From positions 64,914,001 through 64,978,000 of the forward strand of contig NC_083413.1 of assembly GCF_020745735.1 (NCBI RefSeq): DNA of 64,000 bases, read 5' to 3'. The DNA is from Hemiscyllium ocellatum (lineage: Eukaryota). Shown piece by piece: positions 5,584-61,390 of the stretch. The position numbers and the translations under genes were made by a program. Numbering within the stretch: the first letter of the stretch is position 1; each line of letters starts with the position of its first letter. The notes beneath the pieces are model-generated. The model did no database searches. It was given only the letters and a program-made list of their open reading frames with translations, and had not been told where the DNA came from.

Positions 5584-7413
5584 GCAGGGAGAGCAAGTCC
5601 AACATGGAAGAGATCGAACCCTGTGTGGAGTACAAAGTTAAAAATTACACAACACCAGGTTATAGTCCAACAGGTTTATTTGGAATTACAAGCTTTTGGA
5701 GCACTGCTTCTTCATCAGGTAGCTAGTGGGGCAGAATCATAGGGCACAGAATTTATAGCAAAACATCATAGTGTCATCCAACTGATGTGATATATCGAAC
5801 AAACCACGATTGCTGTTAAGTCTCCACTTCCACACCTGTGGGGAATGCAAGCCCAGCATGGCTAAACTCTTAGGAAGGTCTGCAATATTGAACTTTTGAC
5901 TATGTTTCCTTATATTTCTCCTTTATACCTAATCACCCTTGTACCTAAGATGGCACTGGAAATGGTGATATTGTCCACTGTTGTATCATTGTACTTGGAT
6001 ACAGTGGCAATAAAAATTCAACTCTAATTCTAAGTCACAACCGATGACAGCTGAGCTCTCTCAGTATTTCAGGCATATAATTATTTCTGGTATGAGTTTT
6101 TGGTTCCTTAAGTAGCTTCAGATTAAAAAAATGGTTATTCTGGTTAGAGGACGGTAGACCCTGATTTACTTTTCTACCAGGTTCAATTGTTCTTTCTTTG
6201 AGAGTTTTCTAAACAGATCTATGGGAGCTTTTAATGAGAGAACAACAGAGCTTCAGTTTAATACCCTGTCTGAAGTATGTCCCCTCCAACAGAACATCTG
6301 TCTCCAAGTTCTGCACGAGATTGTCAGCCTAGATGTTTGCAGTCACATCTCCGGAATGGGCCTGGAACCCAGATCTTTTGATTTAGAAGATGAATGCTAT
6401 CAATTAACTGAGCCACTACAGATGCAACAGAAATAAAATGCCTCACAGGCAAAGTAGACCAACTGTAATTAATAGTGCCAGTTAAAGGTAGTATTCAACA
6501 AAAGGAGGAGATGCGTATGCTGTTTAACAGAATAGAATGCTTCAAGGCTTAGAACAATTTTAGAATTTAGTGAAAGGTGACCAAGAATTTGATAAAAAAG
6601 AAAGTATGCAAGAGACAAGTTGTCCGTGATATGTACAGGTGAAGAGTCTTAGTTTAAGCTGAGGAATGAAAAACAGTCCCTGAAGATGATTGTTGCACAA
6701 GACCTTCACCTTAAACTCCTCCTGCCTTTATAGACAGCTTGTTGTCATCCTTTTTCCCCTCTGTAAAAATCTGTGAAAGCCATAACTGTGGGAAAAAGGT
6801 CTGACCAGAATCCTTGAATTCCAAACCAAAGTTGTCACCATTTGCAACACTATCCCATATCAACTTTGCCAACTTTAAATAGCACAAGAAACCTCAGTAA
6901 TTCCACAGACTCAGGGATCATGAAGGATTTATTGCACAACTAAATTAACATAGTTGATGATCTCTTTAAGTAAATTGTTGGGGAAAGGGGATGGTATCAG
7001 AAGAAGGCTAACAAGCTGTTGAAAGCACATTTTTAGTTGGATATGTTGAAGAGAGCATGTTAGTTGAAGGAATGAAGTTCAAAATGGTAGCAAGAGTATC
7101 AATTCAACCTTACATACTGATTGATAATCTGCCTCCAGTGTGCATTTCATACAGTACACTCTTACAGTTCTTTCTCAACACTTCAAACATTGGTGTCCAG
7201 CATGCAACAGATGGAAGTGTTTGTGTGTTTAGTGTGATTGCCATTTTGTTCCCAAAAGGCACCCTTAATATTAAAACTATCGATGCATTAGACTTGAATT
7301 TTGCGGTCTTAAAAATGATTGGGCTTTACCAGAACCATGTATGGATTGTTATCTGCAGTTGAGGTCTCTTCATCCAGTGGGATTGAAAGAAATTTCTGTT
7401 AATTAAATTTGAC

Positions 7414-19834: not shown

Positions 19835-22800
19835 CTAATGAGAACCTCTTTGTTTCCAGACTGGTATTGAATTTTGCCTTGGTGCCATCGCTTTTGCACA
19901 ATAACTATACCATGACTCTTGTCTGGTGGCCTGGCACGTCGCCGTCAGCTCAAGGCAGACAAAGCAAAATTCGACAAAACACCTACTGCATCTAATATTT
20001 TTACAACCCGATTGGTTGTGCTCAAGCAGCCTGCCACAAGTAGGGCAGGCCCGAATAGAAGGGCAATTTGTCACAACAGTATCTGGGAGGTTAATTAATG
20101 GGCAGGTACGCAGTGTATCCAATTCTATGTTGGTGCATCCTTCATTGTCACATCGATCAGAACGTGGCCCAGGTCCTTTCCATGGCTTCAGGCATTGCCA
20201 GCAGAATTCAAAAACACTCCGTTTCTCAGCAGTACAGATAATGCAGCGGACACTTAGGTTATCCAGGTCTTTGCGTTCAACAAATGTGCTGCATCCTGGA
20301 CACTAGTGGTAAAAATAAGGCCAAATATTTAGTGACATGAATATATACACATTGATAACCCAGACTGCAACCATGAAAGGTGCAAACCCCCAGAAGTTGC
20401 TGATGTTTCTGTTATCAATGATGATGTGTTAACAGTTTAACCATCACTCCTCTGATAAAATCAAGACCCTAAATCCACTCCTCACAACACCCCAGGATTG
20501 CTACACTCCTACAATGAACAAAAGGAAGCAAAAGAAATAAATTAGAGTATGAGGGGAAGCTAGCTAGGAATGTAAAACCAGACAGCAAGTGCTTCATTTA
20601 GGAATCTGAAAGGTAAAATAATAAGTAAAAGGAGTAATGGACCTCTAGAGCATGAGAATGGGGAATTAAGAGTAGATAATAAAGTAATATTGGATGAGAT
20701 AACATCTTCACCATAGAGCATATTTTTAAAATTGCCAATAACAGCTATAAACCAGGAATGGAAGGGAGAGAGGAACATAATGAGATCACAATCATGTGGA
20801 AATCTGTATTAAACAAACTGCTGGACCTAGAGGCTGACAAGTCTCTGGCTCCAGATGAATTTCATTCCAGAGACTTGAAAGAGGTGGCAATTAAAGAAGT
20901 AATTGCATTTGTCGAAATTTTCCAAACTTCCTTTGAATCAAGAAAGATTCTACTGGACTATGCAAGAAAGCCAAAATAACTAATCTATTTATGAAGGAAA
21001 GTGTGCACATAATAGGAAACTGCAGGCAAGTTCACTTGATGTCTGGTGTGAGAAAGCTTGAAGAATCAATTATTGAAGTGATTACAGTGCACACTTAGAA
21101 AAATTCAAGGTAATTGGTAAGGGTCAAGATGGTTGTGTTGAAGGGAAATCATTTTTAACCAATTTATTAGAGTATTTTGAAAGAGTAACTTGTACTAAGG
21201 ATAAAGGGGAACCAGCAGACATACTCTACTCAGATTTCCAGATACATTTGAGGAGTTGCTGCATCAAAGGTTATTGTACAAAGTGGAAGTTCACAGAGTA
21301 ACGGGTAATAATCAAGCATAGATGGAAGATTTGCCAGCTGACAAAAAAACAGGGAATATGTGTAAATTGATGATGTGCTGTTGAAATCTGTATTGGGGCT
21401 CAAACTTTGGACAGTTTACTTCAATGACGTAAATCCTCAACATTTAATTACATCAATATGTGACGTGACAGTTAACTTGCATTGTTATTTCTGTAGAAAA
21501 CTTACTGATTGGTATTCACAGTACTCAGCTGCAGCCAACACAGCAACAGTTTCCTCAAAATATTGCTGCTCTTCTGCGGTCAGAACTGCCAGCTTGCGAA
21601 CTTCATCATAGGGCCATTCATGTCCACATTTCTCTGTCGTTCCCTCCTTTAGTGCTGGGCAGAAGAACTTATACTGACCCTATGGTTCCAAAGTTAAATG
21701 CAAATGAAAGCTTCAAACTTCAATTCAGTGAGCATCATGTGTGTGGCAGAGTAGTATATCATTCAGTTACAATTCACTAACTGAGTTCCCAACTCACTCA
21801 GGTAGATTCAATGTAATAAAAGTGATAAATAAGTTGCAGATTTTTATTTTAAATTGTTGAAGATAGAACTAAATATTATAATACTAATAAAATACCAAAT
21901 TTGAAATAAATAGATGACAAGAACCAAAGTCACATCATACAGTACAATGTGCAGTAATTTATTTTGATGTACAATAAGTAGTGGTATTGTTCACAAAGCC
22001 CACATATTCAGAATATAATTTTTAACAAGTGTTATGTACTCCAGACTACCTGAAACTTCTCCTTAGGGAGATTGTGGTCTAGCAAAGTTTGACATGTTCA
22101 CTGCAGTACATTTTATTGCATGAGAAACTAGGGACAAGAATGATTCAATTATATTAATAAAATTCAAATTTGGAAAAAAAAACATAAAAAGCATCACTGC
22201 AGGTGGAATAAAGCATTGTTGTATTTTTACACATTTATACAGTTTCTTTAAATTTGACAGACTCAATTTAAAAGCCAAAAATGCTTACCTGATCTAGGAG
22301 ACTTCGACACCAACCGGTCAGTGAATTTGGATCAACTGCATGTTTGCAGGACATTTCTGCTCGCAAAATATTAGGATCATCATCTCCTGAAATGGCAAGG
22401 AACACAGTCACTTTTGAAAGGATGCTATTTGGGAATCAGCAAATGTGAATTACCAATAACAGAAGGGCCAGTTTAAACATTGACCTTGGACTAATATTTG
22501 ATGAACATCTTAACATGATGATGGATTTTTGCAAGGTTTGTGAAGGTTTGTAGCTCAGGGTGAGGTTTGCTCACTGAGCTGTAGGCTTGATATCCAGATG
22601 TTTCATTACCTGGCTAGGTAACATCATCAGTGGCGACCTCCAAGTGAAGCGAAGCTGTTTCTCCTGCTTTCTATTTATATCTTTCTCCTGAATGGGGTTC
22701 CTGGGGTTTGTGGTGATGTCACTTCCTGTTTGTTTTCTGAGGGGTTGATAGATGGCATCTAGGTCTATGTGTTTGTTTATGGTGTTGTGGTTGGAGTGCC

Positions 22801-25382
22801 AGGCCTCTAGGAATTCTCTTGGCATGTCTTTGCTTAGCCTGTCCCAGGATAGATGTGTGGTCCCAGTCGAAATGGTGGTTTATTTCATCTGTGTGTAGGG
22901 CTACGAGGGAGAGAGGGTCGTATCTTTTTGTGGCTAGCTGGTGTTCATGTATCCTGGTGGCTAACTTTCTTCCTGTTTGTCCTATATAGTTTTGTGGCAG
23001 TCCTTGCATGAATTTTGTAGATGATGTTGGTTTTGTCCATGGGTTGTACTGTATCTTTTAAGTTTGTTAGTTTTTGTTTGAGAGTTTTGGTGGATTTGTG
23101 TGCTACTAGGATTCCGAGGGGTCTCAGTAGTCTGGCTGCCATTTCAGAAATGGGGCTTTAGTTTGAGAGGAAGTAATTGAAGTTGAGCTGGCATAACTCA
23201 AAATGGCCATTAAAATTCCTGGAACCTGAAAGTTGCTGAGCTCAACAGGAATTTATAAAGAAGTGACGAAATAACAAGGCAAAGCAACTATTGTTATATG
23301 TAAATTTCTGAAAGGGAACACCACTTTGAAACTGAAAATGTGATCCAAGAGGTTTAATTATCCAGTCATTAATATTCATTAACTGGAATATAGATCTCAC
23401 ACAGATTAGATTAGATTACTTACAGTGTGGAAACAGGCCCTTCGGCCCAACAAGTCCACACCGACCCGCCGAAACGCAACCCACCCATACCCATACCCCT
23501 ACATTTACCCCTTACCTAACACTACGGGCAATTTAGCATGGCCAATTCACCTGACCCGCACATCTTTGGACTGTGGGAGGAAACCGGAGCACCCGGGGGA
23601 AACCCACGCAGACACAGGGAGAACGTGCAAACTCCACACAGTCAGTCGTCTGAGGCAGGAATTGAACCCAGGTCTTAGATTAGATTACTTAGATTTGTAA
23701 ACTTAGATTACTTACAGTGTGGAAACAGGCCCTTCGGCCCAACAAGTCCACACCGACCCGCCGAAGCGCAACCCACCCATACCCCTACATATACCCCTTA
23801 CCTAACACTACGGGCAATTTTAGCATGGCCAATTCACCTGACCCGCACATCTTGGGACTGTGGGAGGAAACCGGAGCACCCGGAGGAAACCCACGCAGAC
23901 ACGGGGAGAACGTGCAAACTCCACACAGTCAGTCGCCTGAGGCGGGAATTGAACCCAGGTCTCTGGCGCTGTGAGGCAGCAATGCTAACCACTGTGCCAC
24001 CGTGCCGCCCTAGGACCTTCACATTTTCTATGAGGAAGTGGCATTTGCACTACAGTTATAGCTGGAACAAAGATCATCTTCCAAATTTCATTTTGTCGTT
24101 TTTAAGTCACCTTGCGCTGGCATGTTATAACACACCTCTGGAGGAGGTGGGATTTAAACCTGGCTGTCCTGGCACAGAGATAGGGACATTACTACTGTAC
24201 GTCAAGAGCCCCCAAATGAGGTAGATTGAAACCTTCCCCACCTCACCATCCATATACAGGGCGACCCCGGTAACTACAGAATCATTTTCCGCACTTTCAG
24301 TTACCCGCAGATTACTGCGGCCCAAACATATTATCGGGAACCAGGGGTCAGGAGGTTGCCTGGAAGGTACATTTCCCATTGAAGTGATTGGGTTCGCTCC
24401 TATCCGCGGTTTCCGGCTTCCGTGGTAGATCCTGGAACGCATCCCCCGGGGTATGTGGGGACTACTGGATGTAAAAGGATATCTGGGGAGCTCTGACAAT
24501 GATCACCAAAATTTGACTGGATGGCTAATTTGTGATTGAAAGTGATGACAACAGCGTGGATTCCATTCCTTCATCAGCTGAGCTAAAAATCACACAACAC
24601 CAGGTTATAGTCCAACAGGTTTGATTTGGAAGCACTAGCTTTCAGAGCGACGCTCCTTCATCAGGTGATTGTCAGGAGCGACGCTCCGAAAGCTAGTGTG
24701 CTTCCAATTAAACCAGTTGGACTATAACCTGGTGTTGTGTGATTTTTAACTTTGTACACCCCAGTCCAACACCGGCATCTCCAAATCATTCATCTGCTGA
24801 AGTCACTATGAAGGAGTTGCCTTCTCAACCTGTTCCCTCATCTAAGGCATGGTGACTGTAGGGTAAAATCATGACTGAATTGTTATTCTTTAATTAGAGA
24901 TTGGGACAATGACGATTTTACTTTCACTTCTCACTATCTGGGAATGTGAACATGAATACACCATAATTCTACTGGCAAAGTAAATAAGCTTCAACCGTGA
25001 TCATTTATATACAAGACAAAGCATCGAAATGTTTAGTGTATATTTCAGTGTAATAGTAACATCATTTTATTTGCACTTAAATCAGCTCTTAACCAGTTGA
25101 AGTCACACCGCCTTGATCTGAAAGGACGTGGTCATCTCGAAGAAAAATCAAAAGACGTTTAAAGGCCTTTGAAAAAATAATTTATCATGTTAATCGATTA
25201 TCACGAATTTGCGAATAAAAATTCTAAAACTAAATTCTTGTTGCTGGTTCAAAACTTGACATGCAGATAACAGAAAGCATATATTTTACTTTACCTGTGA
25301 TCTCATCCTTCCTTTTCACAAACTTCAGCGTACGGTCGTCTGGATCGTAACGCTTTTCTATTTGTTGTTGTAGCGTTGTCAT
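19835..25382 (-). CDS. Minimal RBR-type (RING1-IBR-RING2) E3 ligase, 4 coding exons: 25295-25382, 22289-22386, 21506-21679, 19835-20302; 275 aa
   Basis: Manual splicing gives GT-AG introns with compatible phases (1,0,0) and one open frame: [176 protein letters not shown]...RACPTCGRLLEHNQSGCKNIRCSRCFVEFCFVCL...VWKQRGSH*. IBR-like (CPGC..CIIC..FCWQC) and RING2/Rcat-like (CPTC..GC..CSRC..FCFVC) Cys patterns are present. Confidence 0.92.
20510..21410 (+). mobile_element. Old degenerate CR1 fragment in RBR intron 3
   Basis: L.ADKSLAPDEFHSRDLKEVA tether/RT motifs with stops and frameshifts. Confidence 0.8.
22530..23150 (-). mobile_element. Penelope-like element 3' fragment (GIY-YIG endonuclease + pLTR)
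   Basis: Frameshifted NIIYKI..NYIGQTGRKLATRIHEH..HHFDWDHTSILGQAKQ..REFLEAWHS. Confidence 0.88.
23404..24010 (-). mobile_element. Two tandem HE1-type SINEs (23404-23675 lacking the head; 23702-24010 full length)
   Basis: Two near-identical bodies, each with a (tctaa)n tail. Confidence 0.92.
24257..24467. mobile_element. Tigger/pogo-type MITE resembling MER44
   Basis: Left end TA|CAG..., right end ...GGGGACTACTG. Internal tttcagttacccgcag..gcggcccaaacatatta and ggttcgctcctatccgcggtttccggcttcc..ggaacgcatccccc resemble my recollection of the MER44/Tigger7 consensus ends. Confidence 0.6.
24585..24790. mobile_element. Second family of palindromic hammerhead-bearing mini-element (related copies at 44280-44458, 54828-54996, 5627-5725)
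   Basis: Arms aaaaatcacacaacaccaggttatagtccaac / gttggactataacctggtgttgtgtgattttt. Minus-strand CAC-CTGATGA-AGGAGCGTCGCTCT-GAAA-GCTA-GTG at 24633-24667. Confidence 0.75.
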
Positions 25383-25436
25383 CTCCCAGCTGTATAATGT
25401 GATCTTTGTACAGAAACACTGAATATAAATTGGACT

Positions 25437-25446
25437 GGAAAGTCCC
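25437..25446 (-). promoter_or_regulatory. Canonical NF-kB (kappaB) site GGGACTTTCC upstream of the RBR gene
   Basis: Plus strand GGAAAGTCCC is the exact reverse complement of GGGACTTTCC. It lies 55 bp upstream of the RBR ATG and is followed by a TATA-like TTTATAT (25423-25429). Confidence 0.65.
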
Positions 25447-25979
25447 TTCCACAAGTCAGCACAGGAAGCTGGCAGCATTCACTGCGACTTAAATGATAAT
25501 ACACAACGCAGTTCTCGCCGTATTTTGCCGGTGATAAGCCGACCTCGATGTAAGTCACACATTGTTTCTTTATATGCAATGTTACCATGTATTAGCTAGC
25601 AGCAGATTAAAGGTGACAAATTATTTTTAGCATAACCGCTGTTGCAGACAATGCTGAACACTTAAGCACAGGAAATACCTTTTTGACTTTTTTTATATTA
25701 GACATTGGGTTGCTGACAAAACTACCAAAATGAGTTTATTATGTATCACCAGTCACACTAAGAATTTGGTGATTATGGGCTTTCTTAATCTGCTGCATTC
25801 CTTAACAGGTTGGTGCTCCCAGAATGTTGTTAAATTCCAGCATAGTGGCCCATGATATTAAAGAAATGTTCACATATGCCTATATCCGTGTTGTGAAAAA
25901 CTTGGAGCTGATGGTGACTCCACATATAACCTGCCTGTGTCTTTCTGAACAGTAGGGTTTACTAGTGAGGATAATTTGG

Positions 25980-33499: not shown

Positions 33500-36400
33500 A
33501 GAACGTTTAAGGACTCATCCACCGACGTAATTTGGGTTGAGGTTAGAAACAGGAAAGGAGAGGTCACTCTGTTGGGAGTTTTCTGTAGGCCTCTGAATTG
33601 TTCCAGGGATATAGAGGAAAGGATAGCAAAGATGATTCGCGATAGGAGCTAGAGTAACAGGGTAGTTGTTATGAGGGATTTTAACTTCCCCAATATTGGG
33701 GTAAGGGATAAGATTTATGAACATCTGGGTAGGAATAACGTGATCAGGGATAGCCAGCATGGTTTTGTGAAGGGCAGGTCGTGCCTCACAAACCTTATTG
33801 AGTTCTTTGAGAAGGTGACCAAGGAAGTGGATGAGGGTAAAGCAGTAGATGTTGTGTATATGGATTTTAGTAAGGCGTTCGATAAGGTTCCCCATGGTAG
33901 GCTAATGCTAAAACTTCGGAGGTATGGCATTGAGGATACATTAGAGGTTTGGATTAGGAATTGGCTGGCTGGAAGGAGACAGAGGGTAGTAGTTGATGGA
34001 TTATGTTCATCTTGGAGCGCAGTTACTAGCGGTGTACCACAAGGATCTGTTTTGGGACCATTGCTTTTTGTTATCTTTATAAATGATCTAGAGGAAGGAC
34101 TTGAAAGCTGGGTAAGCAAGTTTGCGGATGACACAAAAGTCGGTGGAGTTGTGGATAGTGAGGAAGGAAGTGGTAGGTTACAGCGGGATATAGATAAGTT
34201 GCAGAGCTGGGCGGAAATGTGGCAAATGGAATTCAATGTAGCTAAGTGCGAAGTCGTTCACTTTGGTAGGAATAACAAGATGATGGATTACTGGGCTAAT
34301 GGTAGGCTACTTGGTAGTGTGGATGAGCAGAGGGATCTTGGTGTCCATGTACACAGATCTCTGAAAGTTGCCACCCAGGTAAATAGTGCTGTGAGGAAGG
34401 CATATGGTGTACTGGGCTTTATTGGCAGAGGAATTGAGTTCCGGAGTCCTGAGGTCATGTTGCAGTTGTATAAGACTCTGGTGCGGCCTCATCTGGAGTA
34501 TTGTGTGCAGTTTTGGTCGCCATACTATAGGAAGGATGTGGAAGCTTTAGAACGAGTGCAGAGGAGGTTTACCAGGATGTTGCCTGGAATGGTAGGAAAA
34601 TCTTATGAGGAAAGGCTGAGGCACTTGGGGCTGTTCTCATTGGAGAAGAGAAGGTTTAGGGGAGATCTGATAGAAGTGTATAAGATGATTAGGGGTTTAG
34701 ATAGGGTAGATACTAAGAACCTTTTACCGCTAATGGAGTCAGGTGTTACTAGGGGACATAGCTTTAAATTAAGGGGTGGTAGGTATAGGACAGATGTTAG
34801 GGGTAGATTCTTCACACAGCGGGTTGTGAGTTCATGGAACGCCCTGCCCGTATCAGTGGTGAACTCTCCTTCTTTATGGTCATTTAAGCGGGCACTGGAT
34901 AGGCATTTGGAAGTTATTGGGCTAGTATAGGTTAGGTAGGATTCGGTCGGCGCAACATCGAGGGCCGAAGGGCCTGTACTGCGCTGTATCCTTCTATGTT
35001 CTATGTTCTATTGACTGGGATTACTATAATTCAAGTAGTTTAGATATGTCAGTTTTTGTTCAATGTGTGCAGGAGGGTTTTCTGACACAGTATGTAGACA
35101 GGCCAACAAAGGGCGATGCATGTTGGATTTGGTACTGGGAAATGAATCCGGCCAGGTGTTAGATGTGGAGGTAGGTAAGCACTTTGGTGATAGTGACCAT
35201 AATTTGGTTATATTTACAATAGCAATGGGCAGGGATAGGTATATACTGCAAGGAAAGAGGAATAGCTTGGGGAAAGGCAATTATGATGCAGTTAGGCAAG
35301 ATTTAGGATGCAAAGGATGGGGAAGGAAACTGCAGGTGATGGACACACTTGAAATGTGGAGCTCATTCAAGAAACAGCTACTGTGGGTCCTTGATAAGTA
35401 CATATCTATCAAGCAGGGAGATAGTTTTTGAGAGAGGCAGCCATAGCTTAAAGAAGTTGAAGCTCTTGTCAAGAGGAAGAAGAAGGCTTGTGAGGATGGG
35501 GTGTGAAGGCATAGGTCGGGGGCTTGAAAGTTATAAGTTAGCCAGAAAGAATCTAAAGAGATGGCTAAGAAGAGCCAGAAAGAGACATGAGAAGTTGTTG
35601 GTGGATAGGATCAAGGAAAACCTTAAGGCCTTCTATAGGTATATCAGGAATAATAGAATGACGAGAGTAAGATTTGGACCAATTAAAGATAGTAGTGGAA
35701 AGTTGTGTGTGGAATCTGAGGATATAGGGGAAATGCTTAATATTTATCGTCGGTATTCACATTGGAAAAGGGCAATGTTAGTGAGAATACAGAGATACAG
35801 GCTACAAGATTAGATGGGATTGAGGTTGACAAAGAGGTTGACAATTTTGGAAGATCTGAAAATAGATAAGACCCCTTGGCCAGATGGGATTTATCCTTGA
35901 TTCTTTGGGAAAACAGGAAGGAGATTGCAGAGCCTTTGACTTCGATATTTATGTTATCATTATTGACAGGAGCAGTGCCAGAAGACTGGAGGATAGCAAA
36001 TGTTGTTCCCTTGTTTAAGAAGGGGAGTTAGGACAACCCTGGTAATTATAGACCAGTGAGCCTTACTTCGGTTATGGTTAAAGGGTTGGAAAAGGTAATA
36101 AGAGATAGGATTAATAATCATCTGGAAAGGGATAGTCAACATGGTTTTGTGAAGAGTAGCTTATGCTGAACTAACCTTATTGAGTTCTTTGAGAAGGTGA
36201 CAAAACAGGTGGATGAAGGTAAAATGGTAAATGTGCTGTATATGGACTTAAGTAAGGCGTTTGATAAGGTTCCACATGGTAGGCTATTGCACAAAATACA
36301 GAATTTCGGGATTGAAGGTGATTTAGTATTTTGGTCAGAAATTTTTCCTGAAAAATGACAGAGGGTGATGATTGATGGGAAATGTTCATCCTGAAGCTCA

Positions 36401-39832: not shown

Positions 39833-40411
39833 CTAGACCCCTCCACCAGGCAGGCGTAACACCAAGAGGATTGTTGATTTGTCCGTGATGCTGTATTCAG
39901 AGAATTTTTTGTTATCCTCCAATTCTTTGTTGGCAAAAAGAAGGCGCAGATCTGCAGTGGCTAATCCACCAAAAGAAACAAACGGAGAAAAATGAATAAA
40001 CGTAAAAAAAACCTCAAGAACATCCTAAATACTATGGTTAGTTATTCCAATTTTAACCTTAAAAGGATTTAGACCCCGCATCCCTTTGGTAGTTAAATTC
40101 TAAAGTTTGGGATAAGCGCTTTAAAACCCAAAGATTTGAATCGGTATCATGTAGTTTAATTCTCATTTTGTACCACCAGGTCTTATGATTGTCCACTCAA
40201 TTCTTTAACTGATTACTGCTATCACTTTCAAAAGCCCACTCTCATGCTCTGTTATTGCTCACGTACCTGCTTCTCCCGGCATTTTCTTCAACAACAATTC
40301 CTTAAACTTGAGAACGGGAATCCTGTTAAATTCTGCCTCAGTGTGTGAAACATCAATAGTCATTTTTTCCCCTTTCAACCCTACGACAAACACTTGAAAG
40401 ATTTTCCCCAT
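39833..40411 (-). CDS. Single-domain ubiquitin-like protein with C-terminal di-glycine (LRLPGG-GV*), 2 exons: 40267-40411 and 39833-39960; 90 aa
   Basis: Spliced translation: MGKIFQVFVVGLKGEKMTIDVSHTEAEFNRIPVLKFKELLLKKMPGEA/ATADLRLLFANKELEDNKKFSEYSITDKSTILLVLRLPGGGV*. It aligns by eye with ubiquitin ([52 protein letters not shown]). Phase-1 intron CAG|GTACGT...TTAG|CC; an alternative in-frame CAG acceptor 9 nt downstream is possible. Confidence 0.92.
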
Positions 40412-40498
40412 TGTACTGTCTGCGGCAAAGGATTTGGAAGTTGCTGTTTATCTCGTGCGTAGTTTTCAAGATCAATTGCAAATGAAATAAATACATTC

Positions 40499-40516
40499 AG
40501 TTTCACTTTTAATTTC
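40499..40516 (-). promoter_or_regulatory. ISRE/IRF-E-like element upstream of the UBL gene
   Basis: Plus strand AGTTTCACTTTTAATTTC (minus GAAATTAAAAGTGAAACT), ~90 bp upstream of the UBL ATG. A GAS-like TTCCTGAAA lies at 40567-40575. Confidence 0.55.
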
Positions 40517-43725: not shown

Positions 43726-43739
43726 AGTTTCGCTTTCTC
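43726..43739 (+). promoter_or_regulatory. Consensus ISRE upstream of the USP18-like gene
   Basis: AGTTTCGCTTTCTC matches the ISRE consensus AGTTTCNNTTTCY; its start lies 89 bp upstream of ATG 43815. Confidence 0.7.
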
Positions 43740-58959: not shown

Positions 58960-60444
58960 AAGTGCTTACAGGATGTTTTCTGGATCACTGTGTTGAGCAA
59001 CCAACTAGAGAAGAGGCCATCCTATACTTGGTATTGTGCAGTAAGAAAGGAATAATTGGCAATCCAGTAGTATGAGGCCCCTTGGGGAAGACTGACTATA
59101 ATATAATAGAATTCTTTCACTGAAATGGAGAGTGATGGAGTTGATTCTGAGATTAGGGTCCTCGAACTAAATAAAGGAAACTGTGATGTTATGAGGCACA
59201 TGATAACGATGATAGATTGGGAACATCACTTTGGAAAAAAAGACATGATGGTGCATAGGCAATAGCAAGCATTTAATGTAAGCAATTGCATAGAGCAACT
59301 GCCACAATTGTTTATTCCTGTCTGGCACAAAAATACAATGAGAAAGGTGGCTTGACCATAGCTAAATAGGGAAATTAGGGATAGTAATTATTTCCATGGA
59401 AGGGACATACAAATTGGCCAAAAAAGAAGCAAACTTGGGGTTTGGCAGCGGTGAGATTTCAGCAAAGAAGGAAAAAAGGGTTGGTTATGGGTGGAACAAT
59501 AGAAAATAAGGGTAAACTTACAGGATATATGCAAACTGATTGTAAAAACTTCTACAGATATATGAAGAGAAAAGGATTAGTGGAGACAAATGTAAGTCTC
59601 TTGCATTCAGAGACAGGGGAAGTTATGATGGGGAACAGAGAGATGGCAGACTGGCTAAATACATGTCTTGTTTTTGTCTTCAAAAGTGATGGACACAAAT
59701 AACATCCCAAAAATGGTGAGGAACTTAACAAGAGGGAGGTGCTGAAGGATATCAGTATTAGTAAGGAAATGGTGTTGGGGAAATTGATGAAAGTAAAGGC
59801 TGATAAATCTCTAGGGACTGACTATCTAGATCCCAGAGTACTTAAGAAAGTGGCCCTGGAAATGGTGATGTATTGGTGGTCACCTTTCTGTAGATGGCCT
59901 ACAAAGTCTGGATTGTAGGGTAGCTAATGTAACCCCATTAATTAGAAAGGAGGTAGAGCAAAAACAGGAAATTATAGAGTTATGAAGAGTTTACTAGACT
60001 GATTCTTGGGTGGGTAGGACTGATCTATGAAGAGAGACTTGACCAATTATGACTATATTAACCAGAGTTTCGAAGACTGAAGGAGAATTTCTGTAAAATA
60101 ATGACAGGGATAGACAGGGCAGATGCAGGAAGGATGTTCCAATGACCATGGAGTCTAGAACAAATGATCACGGTTTCAGGGGTGAGTGAGATGAGGAGAA
60201 ATTACTTCACCCAAAGAGTGGTGAGCTTGTGGAATTCTCTGCAACACAAAATGGTTGAAGCCAAAGCATTGAATGTTTTCAAGAAGGAGGTAGATCCAGT
60301 TCTTTGGACTAAAGGGATCAAAGGGCATGGGGATAAAGCAGGAACAAGGTACTGAGTTGGATGATCATATTGAATGGCAGAGCAGGCTTGAAGGGCTGAA
60401 TGGCCTACTCCTCTTTCATTTTCTATGTTTCTATGGATCTATGG
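58960..60444 (+). mobile_element. Old degenerate CR1 (EN/tether + 3' end)
   Basis: CKNFYRYMKRK, KADKS.G...PRVLKKVA and MRRNYFTQRVVSLWNSL motifs; tail ttctatgtttctatgg. Confidence 0.8.
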
Positions 60445-60463
60445 AAAGCTTACTTTTAGAGGG

Positions 60464-61390
60464 ATGGCAGTGCAGAGAGGGCAATGTTCCTCTTGCAACA
60501 TGTATGAGGTGAGGGAAGCCATTAGCCTCCCTGCTGAGTACACTTGCAAGAAGTGCACCCATCTCCAGCTCCTCCAAACCCGTGTTAGGGAACTGGAGCT
60601 GGAGTTGGATGAACTGCGGATCATTCGGGAGGCAGAGGAGGTCATAGATCGGAGCTATAGGCAAGTAGTTACTCCGAAAGTTCAAGATAGATGGGTGACA
60701 GTGAGGGGGAGTGGGAGGAGGAAGACAGTGCAGGGACCCCCTGCGGTCATTCCCCTCAAGAACAAGTATACCGTTTTGGATACTTGTGGGGGGGATGACT
60801 TACCAGGGGTAAGCAACGAGGTTCAGGCCTCTGGCACGGAGCCTGGCCCCGTTGCTCAGAAGGGTAGGGTGGAGAAAGGTAGAGCAATTGTTCTTGGGGA
60901 CTCGATAGTGAGGGGTACAGACAGACGGTTTTGTGGGGGCGACAGGGACTCACGTTTGGTATGTTGCCTCCCAGGTGCAAGGGTACGTGATGTCGCTGAT
61001 CGTGTTTTCCGGGTCCTTAAGGGGGAGGGGGAGCAGCCCCAGATCGTGGTCCACGTTGGCACCAACGATATAGGTAGGAAGAAGGGTGAGGATGTAAGGC
61101 AGGCTTTCAGGGAGCTAGGTTGGAAGCTCAGAGTTAGAACAAACAGAGTTGTAGTCTCTGGTTTGTTACCCGTGCCACGTGATAGAGAGTCGAGGAACAG
61201 GGAGAGAGAGCAGTTAAATGCGTGGCTACAGGGATGGTGCAGGAGGGAGGGATTCCGGTTTCTGGATAACTGGGGTCCTTTCTGGGGAAGGTGGGACCTC
61301 TATAAAAAGGATGGTCTACACTTGAACCTGAGGGGCACCAGTATCCTTGGGGGGAGGTTTGCTAGTGCTCTTTGGGAGGGTTTAAACTAA
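60464..61390 (+). CDS. CR1 ORF1 (Zn-finger + coiled coil + SGNH/GDSL esterase)
   Basis: CxxC...CxxC, then LELELDEL coiled coil, GDS, GTND and DGLH motifs. ATG 60464 is preferred because the track's ATG at 60425 lies in the microsatellite tail of the preceding element. Confidence 0.9.
   Translation: MAVQRGQCSSCNMYEVREAISLPAEYTCKKCTHLQLLQTRVRELELELDELRIIREAEEVIDRSYRQVVTPKVQDRWVTVRGSGRRKTVQGPPAVIPLKNKYTVLDTCGGDDLPGVSNEVQASGTEPGPVAQKGRVEKGRAIVLGDSIVRGTDRRFCGGDRDSRLVCCLPGARVRDVADRVFRVLKGEGEQPQIVVHVGTNDIGRKKGEDVRQAFRELGWKLRVRTNRVVVSGLLPVPRDRESRNREREQLNAWLQGWCRREGFRFLDNWGPFWGRWDLYKKDGLHLNLRGTSILGGRFASALWEGLN

Follow-up and report, generated by a model that had tools for sequence, protein, structure and literature searches.

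A 64,000-nucleotide stretch of Hemiscyllium ocellatum DNA (hereafter the window) encodes a 90-aa single-domain ubiquitin-like protein (UBL) in two exons on the minus strand. That this is a real, conserved and interferon-linked UBL gene we regard as close to certain. We propose that the locus is a functional UBL gene of an uncharacterised interferon-induced family and that its product is most likely a conjugatable tag. In this whole statement, conjugation included, we have moderate confidence.

Gene structure and fold of the shark UBL

The gene is laid out as follows:

40267 to 40411, minus strand: UBL coding exon 1, with the ATG at 40411; 145 nt (48 codons plus 1 base), donor CAG/GTACGT
39961 to 40266, minus strand: UBL intron, phase 1, with GT at 40266-40265 and AG at 39962-39961; the spliced product is P0001
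39833 to 39960, minus strand: UBL coding exon 2, 128 nt, encoding the C-terminal half of the ubiquitin fold, LRLPGG, a GV tail and a TAG stop at 39835-39833

A polypyrimidine tract lies 5' of the acceptor AG of exon 2. The spliced CDS of 273 nt encodes 90 aa, with LRLPGG-GV-stop at the C-terminus, and the translation matches P0001, the RefSeq model "polyubiquitin [Hemiscyllium ocellatum]", at every residue. The RefSeq name is wrong because the UBL has one domain only. The gene is single-copy in the window, which contains no N. A preliminary description of this DNA had placed a spliced gene at 39833-40411; both coordinates and structure were exact, and the CDS is that of the RefSeq model. The same description had called the gene hidden. 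It is indeed absent as a whole from the prokaryote-style ORF list, but it is already annotated in RefSeq and was therefore hidden from that list only. Nor did the ORF track miss the gene altogether: each half appears in it as a short ORF of its own.

A second in-frame acceptor (CAG) is present 9 nt into exon 2 (window 39952-39962, minus strand). Its use would shorten the loop before the R42-equivalent, which is precisely where orthologues differ in length, by three residues (ATA).

A HMMER search against Pfam PF00240, suggested as a check in the preliminary description, matched the full UBL at 38.9 bits (E 7.1e-10; curated gathering cut-off 25.4 bits), with residues 9-85 on model positions 3-71. 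Exon 2 alone also matches PF00240 (E 5.8e-8) and aligns gap-free to ubiquitin 41-76, its GG falling on G75-G76. Exon 1 alone has no match in Pfam or PDB, and the fold is therefore identifiable only from the full-length protein or exon 2. The AlphaFold2 model, with a 77-sequence family alignment as input, has a pLDDT of 82.8 and a beta-grasp fold with an additional short helix at residues 25-30. The best Foldseek matches of this model among Swiss-Prot models and the PDB were all ubiquitin (probability 1.00, TM 0.7-0.88, 30-37% identity), with UBL residues 6-88 on ubiquitin 2-76. The UBL belongs to the ubiquitin family PF00240 and has the beta-grasp fold.

Ubiquitin shares this fold and is the best match of the UBL in both structure and sequence. 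The UBL retains equivalents of L8, R42, the I44 position (hydrophobic), V70, L71, R72, L73, G75 and G76, and the ubiquitin precursor likewise continues for some residues beyond GG. Alignment of exon 2 to ubiquitin confirmed the equivalents of R42, S65, R72 and G75-G76 and the substitutions R74>P, H68>L, I44>L and G47>N that had been read from the sequence at the outset. A K48 equivalent, also proposed, is present in the Hemiscyllium UBL but varies even among sharks, and across the family no lysine is conserved at the K48 or K63 positions. The proposed insertion before helix 1 was confirmed as well; since residues 9-85 align to 69 Pfam model positions, it measures about 8 residues.

The differences from ubiquitin are nevertheless substantial. 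The UBL is only 34-40% identical, runs to 88 residues up to GG rather than 76, and ends in LRLPGG instead of LRLRGG, with Pro for R74 and Leu for H68. It adds a 4-residue N-terminal extension, MGKI, to the roughly 8 residues before helix 1, and its K48 and K63 positions are not conserved. Whereas ubiquitin is near-invariant, the UBL evolves at a dN/dS of ~0.2-0.4, and unlike ubiquitin it is the product of a single-copy, two-exon, interferon-induced gene. The original reading as a stand-alone, spliced, single-domain UBL other than ubiquitin is supported.

The zgc:194655 family and its interferon induction

The UBL is the shark orthologue of zebrafish zgc:194655. It matches family members with E values of 1e-30 to 1e-47, and NCBI gives the name zgc:194655 to the Heterodontus orthologue. 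The hallmarks of the family are all present: similarity over the full length, an MGK(I/F)(Y/F)QV start, an R-[LM]-P-G-G end and the same intron position. Word-indexed and exhaustive searches recovered ~90-aa orthologues with an invariant LRLPGG in ten sharks, and further orthologues in skates, chimaera and teleosts; the exhaustive representative search was dominated by polyubiquitins and yielded seven usable single-domain relatives. A profile search returned 136 proteins, many labelled "uncharacterized protein zgc:194655" by NCBI. Among the matches listed, the family occurs in cartilaginous fishes (sharks, rays, sawfish, chimaera), in ray-finned fishes (bichir, sturgeon, bowfin, eels, bonytongues, herrings, milkfish, carps, characins, catfishes, knifefishes and a few euteleosts) and in the lobe-finned coelacanth and lungfish. 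No tetrapod member was among the matches listed, which are the best 120 of the 136, and land vertebrates appear to lack the family. The sequences place its origin before the split of cartilaginous and bony fishes. In a maximum-likelihood tree (95 columns, ubiquitin as outgroup), members cluster broadly by taxon, the ubiquitin branch is long (1.14) and deep nodes are unresolved.

Comparison across the family bears out the early reading of the C-terminus. The GG (G87, G88) is invariant in 77 of 77 aligned sequences, as is M1. The Pro before it, P86, is conserved in at least 90%, together with G2, Q6, G11, G14, E15, D20, E25, K37, P45, R54, L62, D64, S77 and R84. The residues after GG, which had been taken for a propeptide, are variable: they are 1-44 long and unrelated among orthologues (GV, GD, VV, MEQ, ER, GRRC, SAL, R and others). 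The motif has exceptions: the R72-position Arg gives way to K, L, S, Q or M in some members, and the tail Pro to His in two clupeids.

Epaulette shark, whale shark, skate and chimaera all share a first exon of 145 nt. The Nei-Gojobori dN/dS against whale shark is 0.39 at a dS of 0.32, and deeper, saturated pairs give 0.13-0.28. These ratios, which the preliminary description had also proposed to examine, stay below 0.4 and indicate purifying selection, much looser than that on ubiquitin.

We considered N-myristoylation of the conserved Met-Gly start and rejected it. The PROSITE rule disfavours Lys directly after Gly and Gln at the fifth position after Gly, and the UBL has both.

Catsharks and houndsharks (Scyliorhinus, Mustelus; P0080, P0120, P0172) have, on the same chromosome, an extra UBL paralogue whose tail motif has diverged to LRLAGG, LRLRGG or LPLPGG and is followed by a long, conserved, acidic, Cys-containing extension after GG; this paralogue may be an uncleaved or differently processed form. 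Separately, the multi-domain ubiquitin-like proteins P0234 and P0214 (34-38% identity) contain LRLPGGGV or RLPGGGV. They lie outside the zgc:194655 family, and the Pro at the R74 position therefore arose more than once.

The family is interferon-induced, as measured by RNA-seq for the zebrafish orthologue; for shark and skate, it is suggested by the conserved ISRE-like element. In zebrafish, zgc:194655 (ENSDARG00000100942) is among 360 IFNphi1-induced genes, with a fold change of 18.1 (padj 0.015; Levraud et al., Tables S1/S3, bioRxiv 10.1101/693333), and among the CHIKV-induced genes, with a fold change of 12.0 (padj 1.4e-5; RNA-seq, bioRxiv 10.1101/693333). The same tables enter no human orthologue for it, while isg15, usp18 and uba7 are separate zebrafish genes, 1-to-1 with human (bioRxiv 10.1101/693333). 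Because these three are listed apart from zgc:194655, the latter is not the fish ISG15. The zebrafish RNA-seq measurements also establish that the family has transcripts, the lack of which had been named at the outset as a ground for refuting the reading.

Two promoter elements in the window are relevant here:

40494 to 40516, minus strand: ISRE/IRF-E-like element of the UBL, composed of three overlapping matches to GAAANNGAAAS with one mismatch each, ~85-105 bp upstream of the ATG
43727 to 43737, minus strand: perfect ISRE core GAAAGCGAAAC, 78-88 bp upstream of the USP start codon

The UBL element contains a block of ~22 nt, GAAATT-N-A-N-AGTGAAACTGAA, that is near-invariant among epaulette shark, whale shark (Rhincodon) and skate (Rhinoraja), with diverging flanks; its skate copy is a perfect GAAAGTGAAACT. 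ISRE-like elements occur at most ~100 bp from the UBL ATG in every locus read, including chimaera and both teleosts. The perfect ISRE core has 6 matches in the window versus 2.2 expected. In the 500 bp upstream of the start of the neighbouring RBR gene, we found no ISRE-like match with up to one mismatch in either shark (window 25383-25900) or skate (locus L003, 18000-18480). In teleosts, RBR and UBL have a common short bidirectional promoter region.

These data bear on whether the locus could be a decayed ubiquitin copy (a pseudogene or retrocopy) or a chance UBL-like annotation artefact. The RefSeq name "polyubiquitin" and the ubiquitin identity of only ~34-40% would fit such an origin. However, the reading frame is intact, dN/dS is below 0.4, syntenic orthologues span roughly 450 million years and the zebrafish orthologue is transcribed and induced. 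The intron is conserved, and the UBL is therefore not a retrocopy. Intron, dN/dS and synteny rule out the pseudogene, retrocopy and chance-ORF readings, and we give this explanation a negligible probability.

The family is already known from RefSeq annotation and from one table of interferon-stimulated genes and is otherwise uncharacterised. Full-text literature searches found no mention of zgc:194655 or of the motif (LRLPGG, RLPGG), and no functional study of zgc:194655 was found; the one literature record that came up is in the supplementary tables of bioRxiv 10.1101/693333.

Linked USP and RBR genes

The UBL is flanked by a candidate protease gene and a candidate ligase gene:

43815 to 44192, plus strand: USP first coding ORF, low-complexity N-terminus, head-to-head with the UBL and 3.4 kb away; a 467-aa UCH model starts here
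54174 to 54350, plus strand: open frame containing the USP Cys-box exon, motif NNCCVNALLQ
19838 to 25478, minus strand: RBR ligase gene, downstream of the UBL, with conserved exons within 25478-25233, 22435-22271, 21679-21488 and 20302-19838

The USP that had been noted beside the UBL is a consistent neighbour, linked to it in sharks, skate and two teleosts; an orthologous first exon is found in the whale shark locus L005 at 6270-5830. Its exons resemble USP47 or generic USPs and do not specifically support the presumed USP18-like identity. The Cys-box exons of shark and teleost USPs have USP47 as their best PDB match, followed by USP28 or USP7, and USP18 is not among their PDB matches up to E 10. 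A second teleost USP exon again gives USP47 as best match. For the His-box exon, a generic one, USP15 and USP8 rank highest; USP18 follows at E 1e-3 and USP47 at E 6e-3. Since USP47 and USP18 are described as a diverged ohnologue pair (PMC5381560), the neighbouring USP possibly adds a third member to this lineage. One short exon (34% identity over 29 residues) and common best matches indicate that the shark and teleost USPs are orthologous. Teleost USP exons used as queries found no further shark USP exons in the window, and the shark subfamily assignment therefore rests on a single exon.

The whale shark locus has a 258-aa UCH model (L005 1-5842, plus strand) on the strand opposite to the head-to-head USP (5830-6270, minus strand). 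It sits where the first USP intron is expected, in a locus with a masked N run. No counterpart of this second UCH model was found in the Hemiscyllium window.

The last exon of the RBR gene (20302-19838) encodes an IBR and an Rcat domain; the Rcat keeps a Cys at the catalytic position and aligns best to ARIH2 and ARIH1. The order USP, UBL, RBR is found in Hemiscyllium, Rhincodon and Rhinoraja. Partial clusters are present in Chiloscyllium, with USP and UBL head-to-head, and in Heterodontus, with the RBR downstream. In the teleosts Salminus and Cirrhinus the order is RBR, UBL, USP: the UBL is head-to-head with a 265-269-aa gene lacking any Pfam record, and a ~347-aa USP follows. The 265-269-aa gene is the RBR orthologue, matching exon by exon (tblastn; last exon E 1e-55). 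Within 10 kb of the UBL, chimaera and bichir have neither USP nor RBR. The three-gene cluster proposed in the preliminary description holds under cross-species synteny, and the shared linkage in shark, skate and teleost indicates that the three genes have stayed together, with rearrangement, since the cartilaginous and bony fishes split.

Other elements surround the cluster. In teleosts (L004 14155-16207, L002 18953-20309), it lies amid immune-type genes, namely a GIMAP/AIG1-like GTPase ORF, a B30.2 (PRY/SPRY) gene and a caspase-domain gene. The Hemiscyllium window contains a transposon ORF with reverse transcriptase RVT_1 at 33671-34927 (plus strand, E 4e-28), a transposon ORF with a GDSL-esterase domain at 60425-61387 (plus strand) and, at the window end, a long CR1-like ORF adjoining other transposon ORFs.

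A UBL next to an RBR gene could also belong to a parkin-like UBL-RBR ligase as its N-terminal domain, if transcripts read through or are alternatively spliced into the RBR 14 kb downstream. The same strand and order in sharks and skate would permit this. A protein atlas contains a 117-member cluster of ~92-aa chordate UBLs auto-named "Probable E3 ubiquitin-protein ligase ARI8", and this Ariadne ligase name may reflect fused models; the label was probably carried over from gene models that join the UBL to the neighbouring RBR. However, a stop follows GG by two codons within exon 2, and ~90-aa models have been called independently in dozens of species. The teleost RBR lies on the opposite strand, head-to-head with the UBL, and no fusion is therefore possible there. 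Likewise, the concern that exon 2 might splice onward into a larger protein is not supported: the exon ends in its stop, and the teleost neighbours are separate models on the other strand or downstream. We consider a UBL-RBR fusion very improbable.

A putative conjugatable tag

The family has the hallmark of conjugatable (type I) modifiers, a conserved GG at the ubiquitin 75-76 position followed by a variable tail. The same combination also typifies precursors in which trimming exposes the GG. We propose tag processing because GG is invariant while the tails that follow vary in length and sequence. In the proposed mechanism, the precursor would be trimmed after the invariant Gly-Gly, shedding its short variable tail (GV in Hemiscyllium). 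The exposed LPGG end, in which Arg at the R72 position is usually kept, would then be activated by an E1. The tag would be passed to its targets, plausibly by the neighbouring Ariadne-type RBR ligase, and removed, perhaps also first matured, by the neighbouring USP. By virtue of its conserved Pro at the R74 position (P3), the tag would stay separate from the proteases of ubiquitin and ISG15. We infer processing, conjugation, the choice of enzymes and the role of the Pro from sequence and linkage. Several findings count against a tag: the Arg at the R72 position is not universal, two clupeids have His for the Pro, no chain lysine is conserved, and chimaera and bichir have no linked USP or RBR within 10 kb.

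The closest functional parallel is ISG15, whose conjugation system consists of UBA7, UBE2L6, HERC5 and USP18. Both ISG15 and the UBL are interferon-induced with an ISRE promoter (UBL induction being taken from the zebrafish orthologue only), evolve fairly fast, have a C-terminal extension in the precursor and are paired with a USP. However, ISG15 consists of two tandem UBL domains, whereas the shark UBL and all its orthologues have one, in 90 aa. ISG15 ends in LRLRGG and the UBL in LRLPGG, with the Pro at least 90% conserved. The ISGylation ligase HERC5 is of HECT type, in contrast to the UBL-linked RBR. The ISG15 protease is USP18; the Cys-box exons of the UBL-linked USP are closest to USP47, USP28 and USP7, and its His-box exon is generic. 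NEDD8 differs at another position: its Ala72 selects the NEDD8 E1, whereas the UBL has Arg there (R84, at least 90% conserved).

A Pro near the scissile GG has an engineered precedent in L73P ubiquitin and NEDD8, which likewise carry Pro in the C-terminal tail (PMC5419743). These variants are still conjugated, yet resist many proteases (PMC5419743). The engineered Pro is artificial and at P4, whereas that of the UBL is natural, conserved and at P3 (the R74 position).

The main rival to a conjugated tag is an interferon-induced UBL that acts unconjugated, either as a free partner or allosteric regulator of the linked RBR or USP, or as a decoy for viral or host proteases that recognise ubiquitin tails. 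Precedents are the activation of other RBR ligases by ubiquitin-like proteins and the stabilisation of USP18 by free ISG15. In the pairs of NEDD8 with Ariadne RBRs and of phospho-ubiquitin with parkin, as in the shark cluster, a UBL is paired with an RBR, and the shark Rcat is closest to ARIH2 and ARIH1. In those pairs, however, the UBL acts as an allosteric activator of a ligase that transfers ubiquitin, whereas the shark pairing is known from genomic linkage alone. Linkage to an RBR and a USP suits a regulator as well as a substrate, and the R72-position Arg, which is not universal, and the lack of conserved chain lysines fit this reading too. A tail Pro can moreover block proteases (PMC5419743). 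Against this, an invariant GG at the ubiquitin cleavage position with freely varying tails behind it would serve no obvious purpose in a pure binder. The precursor-like tail pattern argues against an unconjugated regulator or decoy, which we consider unlikely.

If the UBL is a conjugated tag, a broader proposal, which we put forward tentatively, is that jawed fishes have a second complete interferon-induced tagging system parallel to ISG15. It would comprise an LPGG tag, a dedicated RBR "writer" and a dedicated USP "eraser", clustered since before the divergence of cartilaginous and bony fishes and later lost in land vertebrates. The tail Pro would insulate it from ubiquitin and ISG15 proteases, viral ones included.

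To our knowledge, new conjugatable ubiquitin-like tags are rare in vertebrates, and ISG15 is treated as the sole interferon-specific one. The tag proposed here would have its own conserved tail motif and linkage to a candidate ligase and a candidate protease for roughly 450 million years, and its natural Pro beside the cleavage site is relevant to tag evasion of proteases, whether host or viral. Zebrafish carries the whole family and is therefore a tractable test system. Were the UBL not conjugated, it would still be an unstudied, ancient interferon-stimulated gene with conserved partners. Fishes may possess a second antiviral protein-tagging system, and a second interferon-induced tag, if true, would change the view of how antiviral tagging originated.
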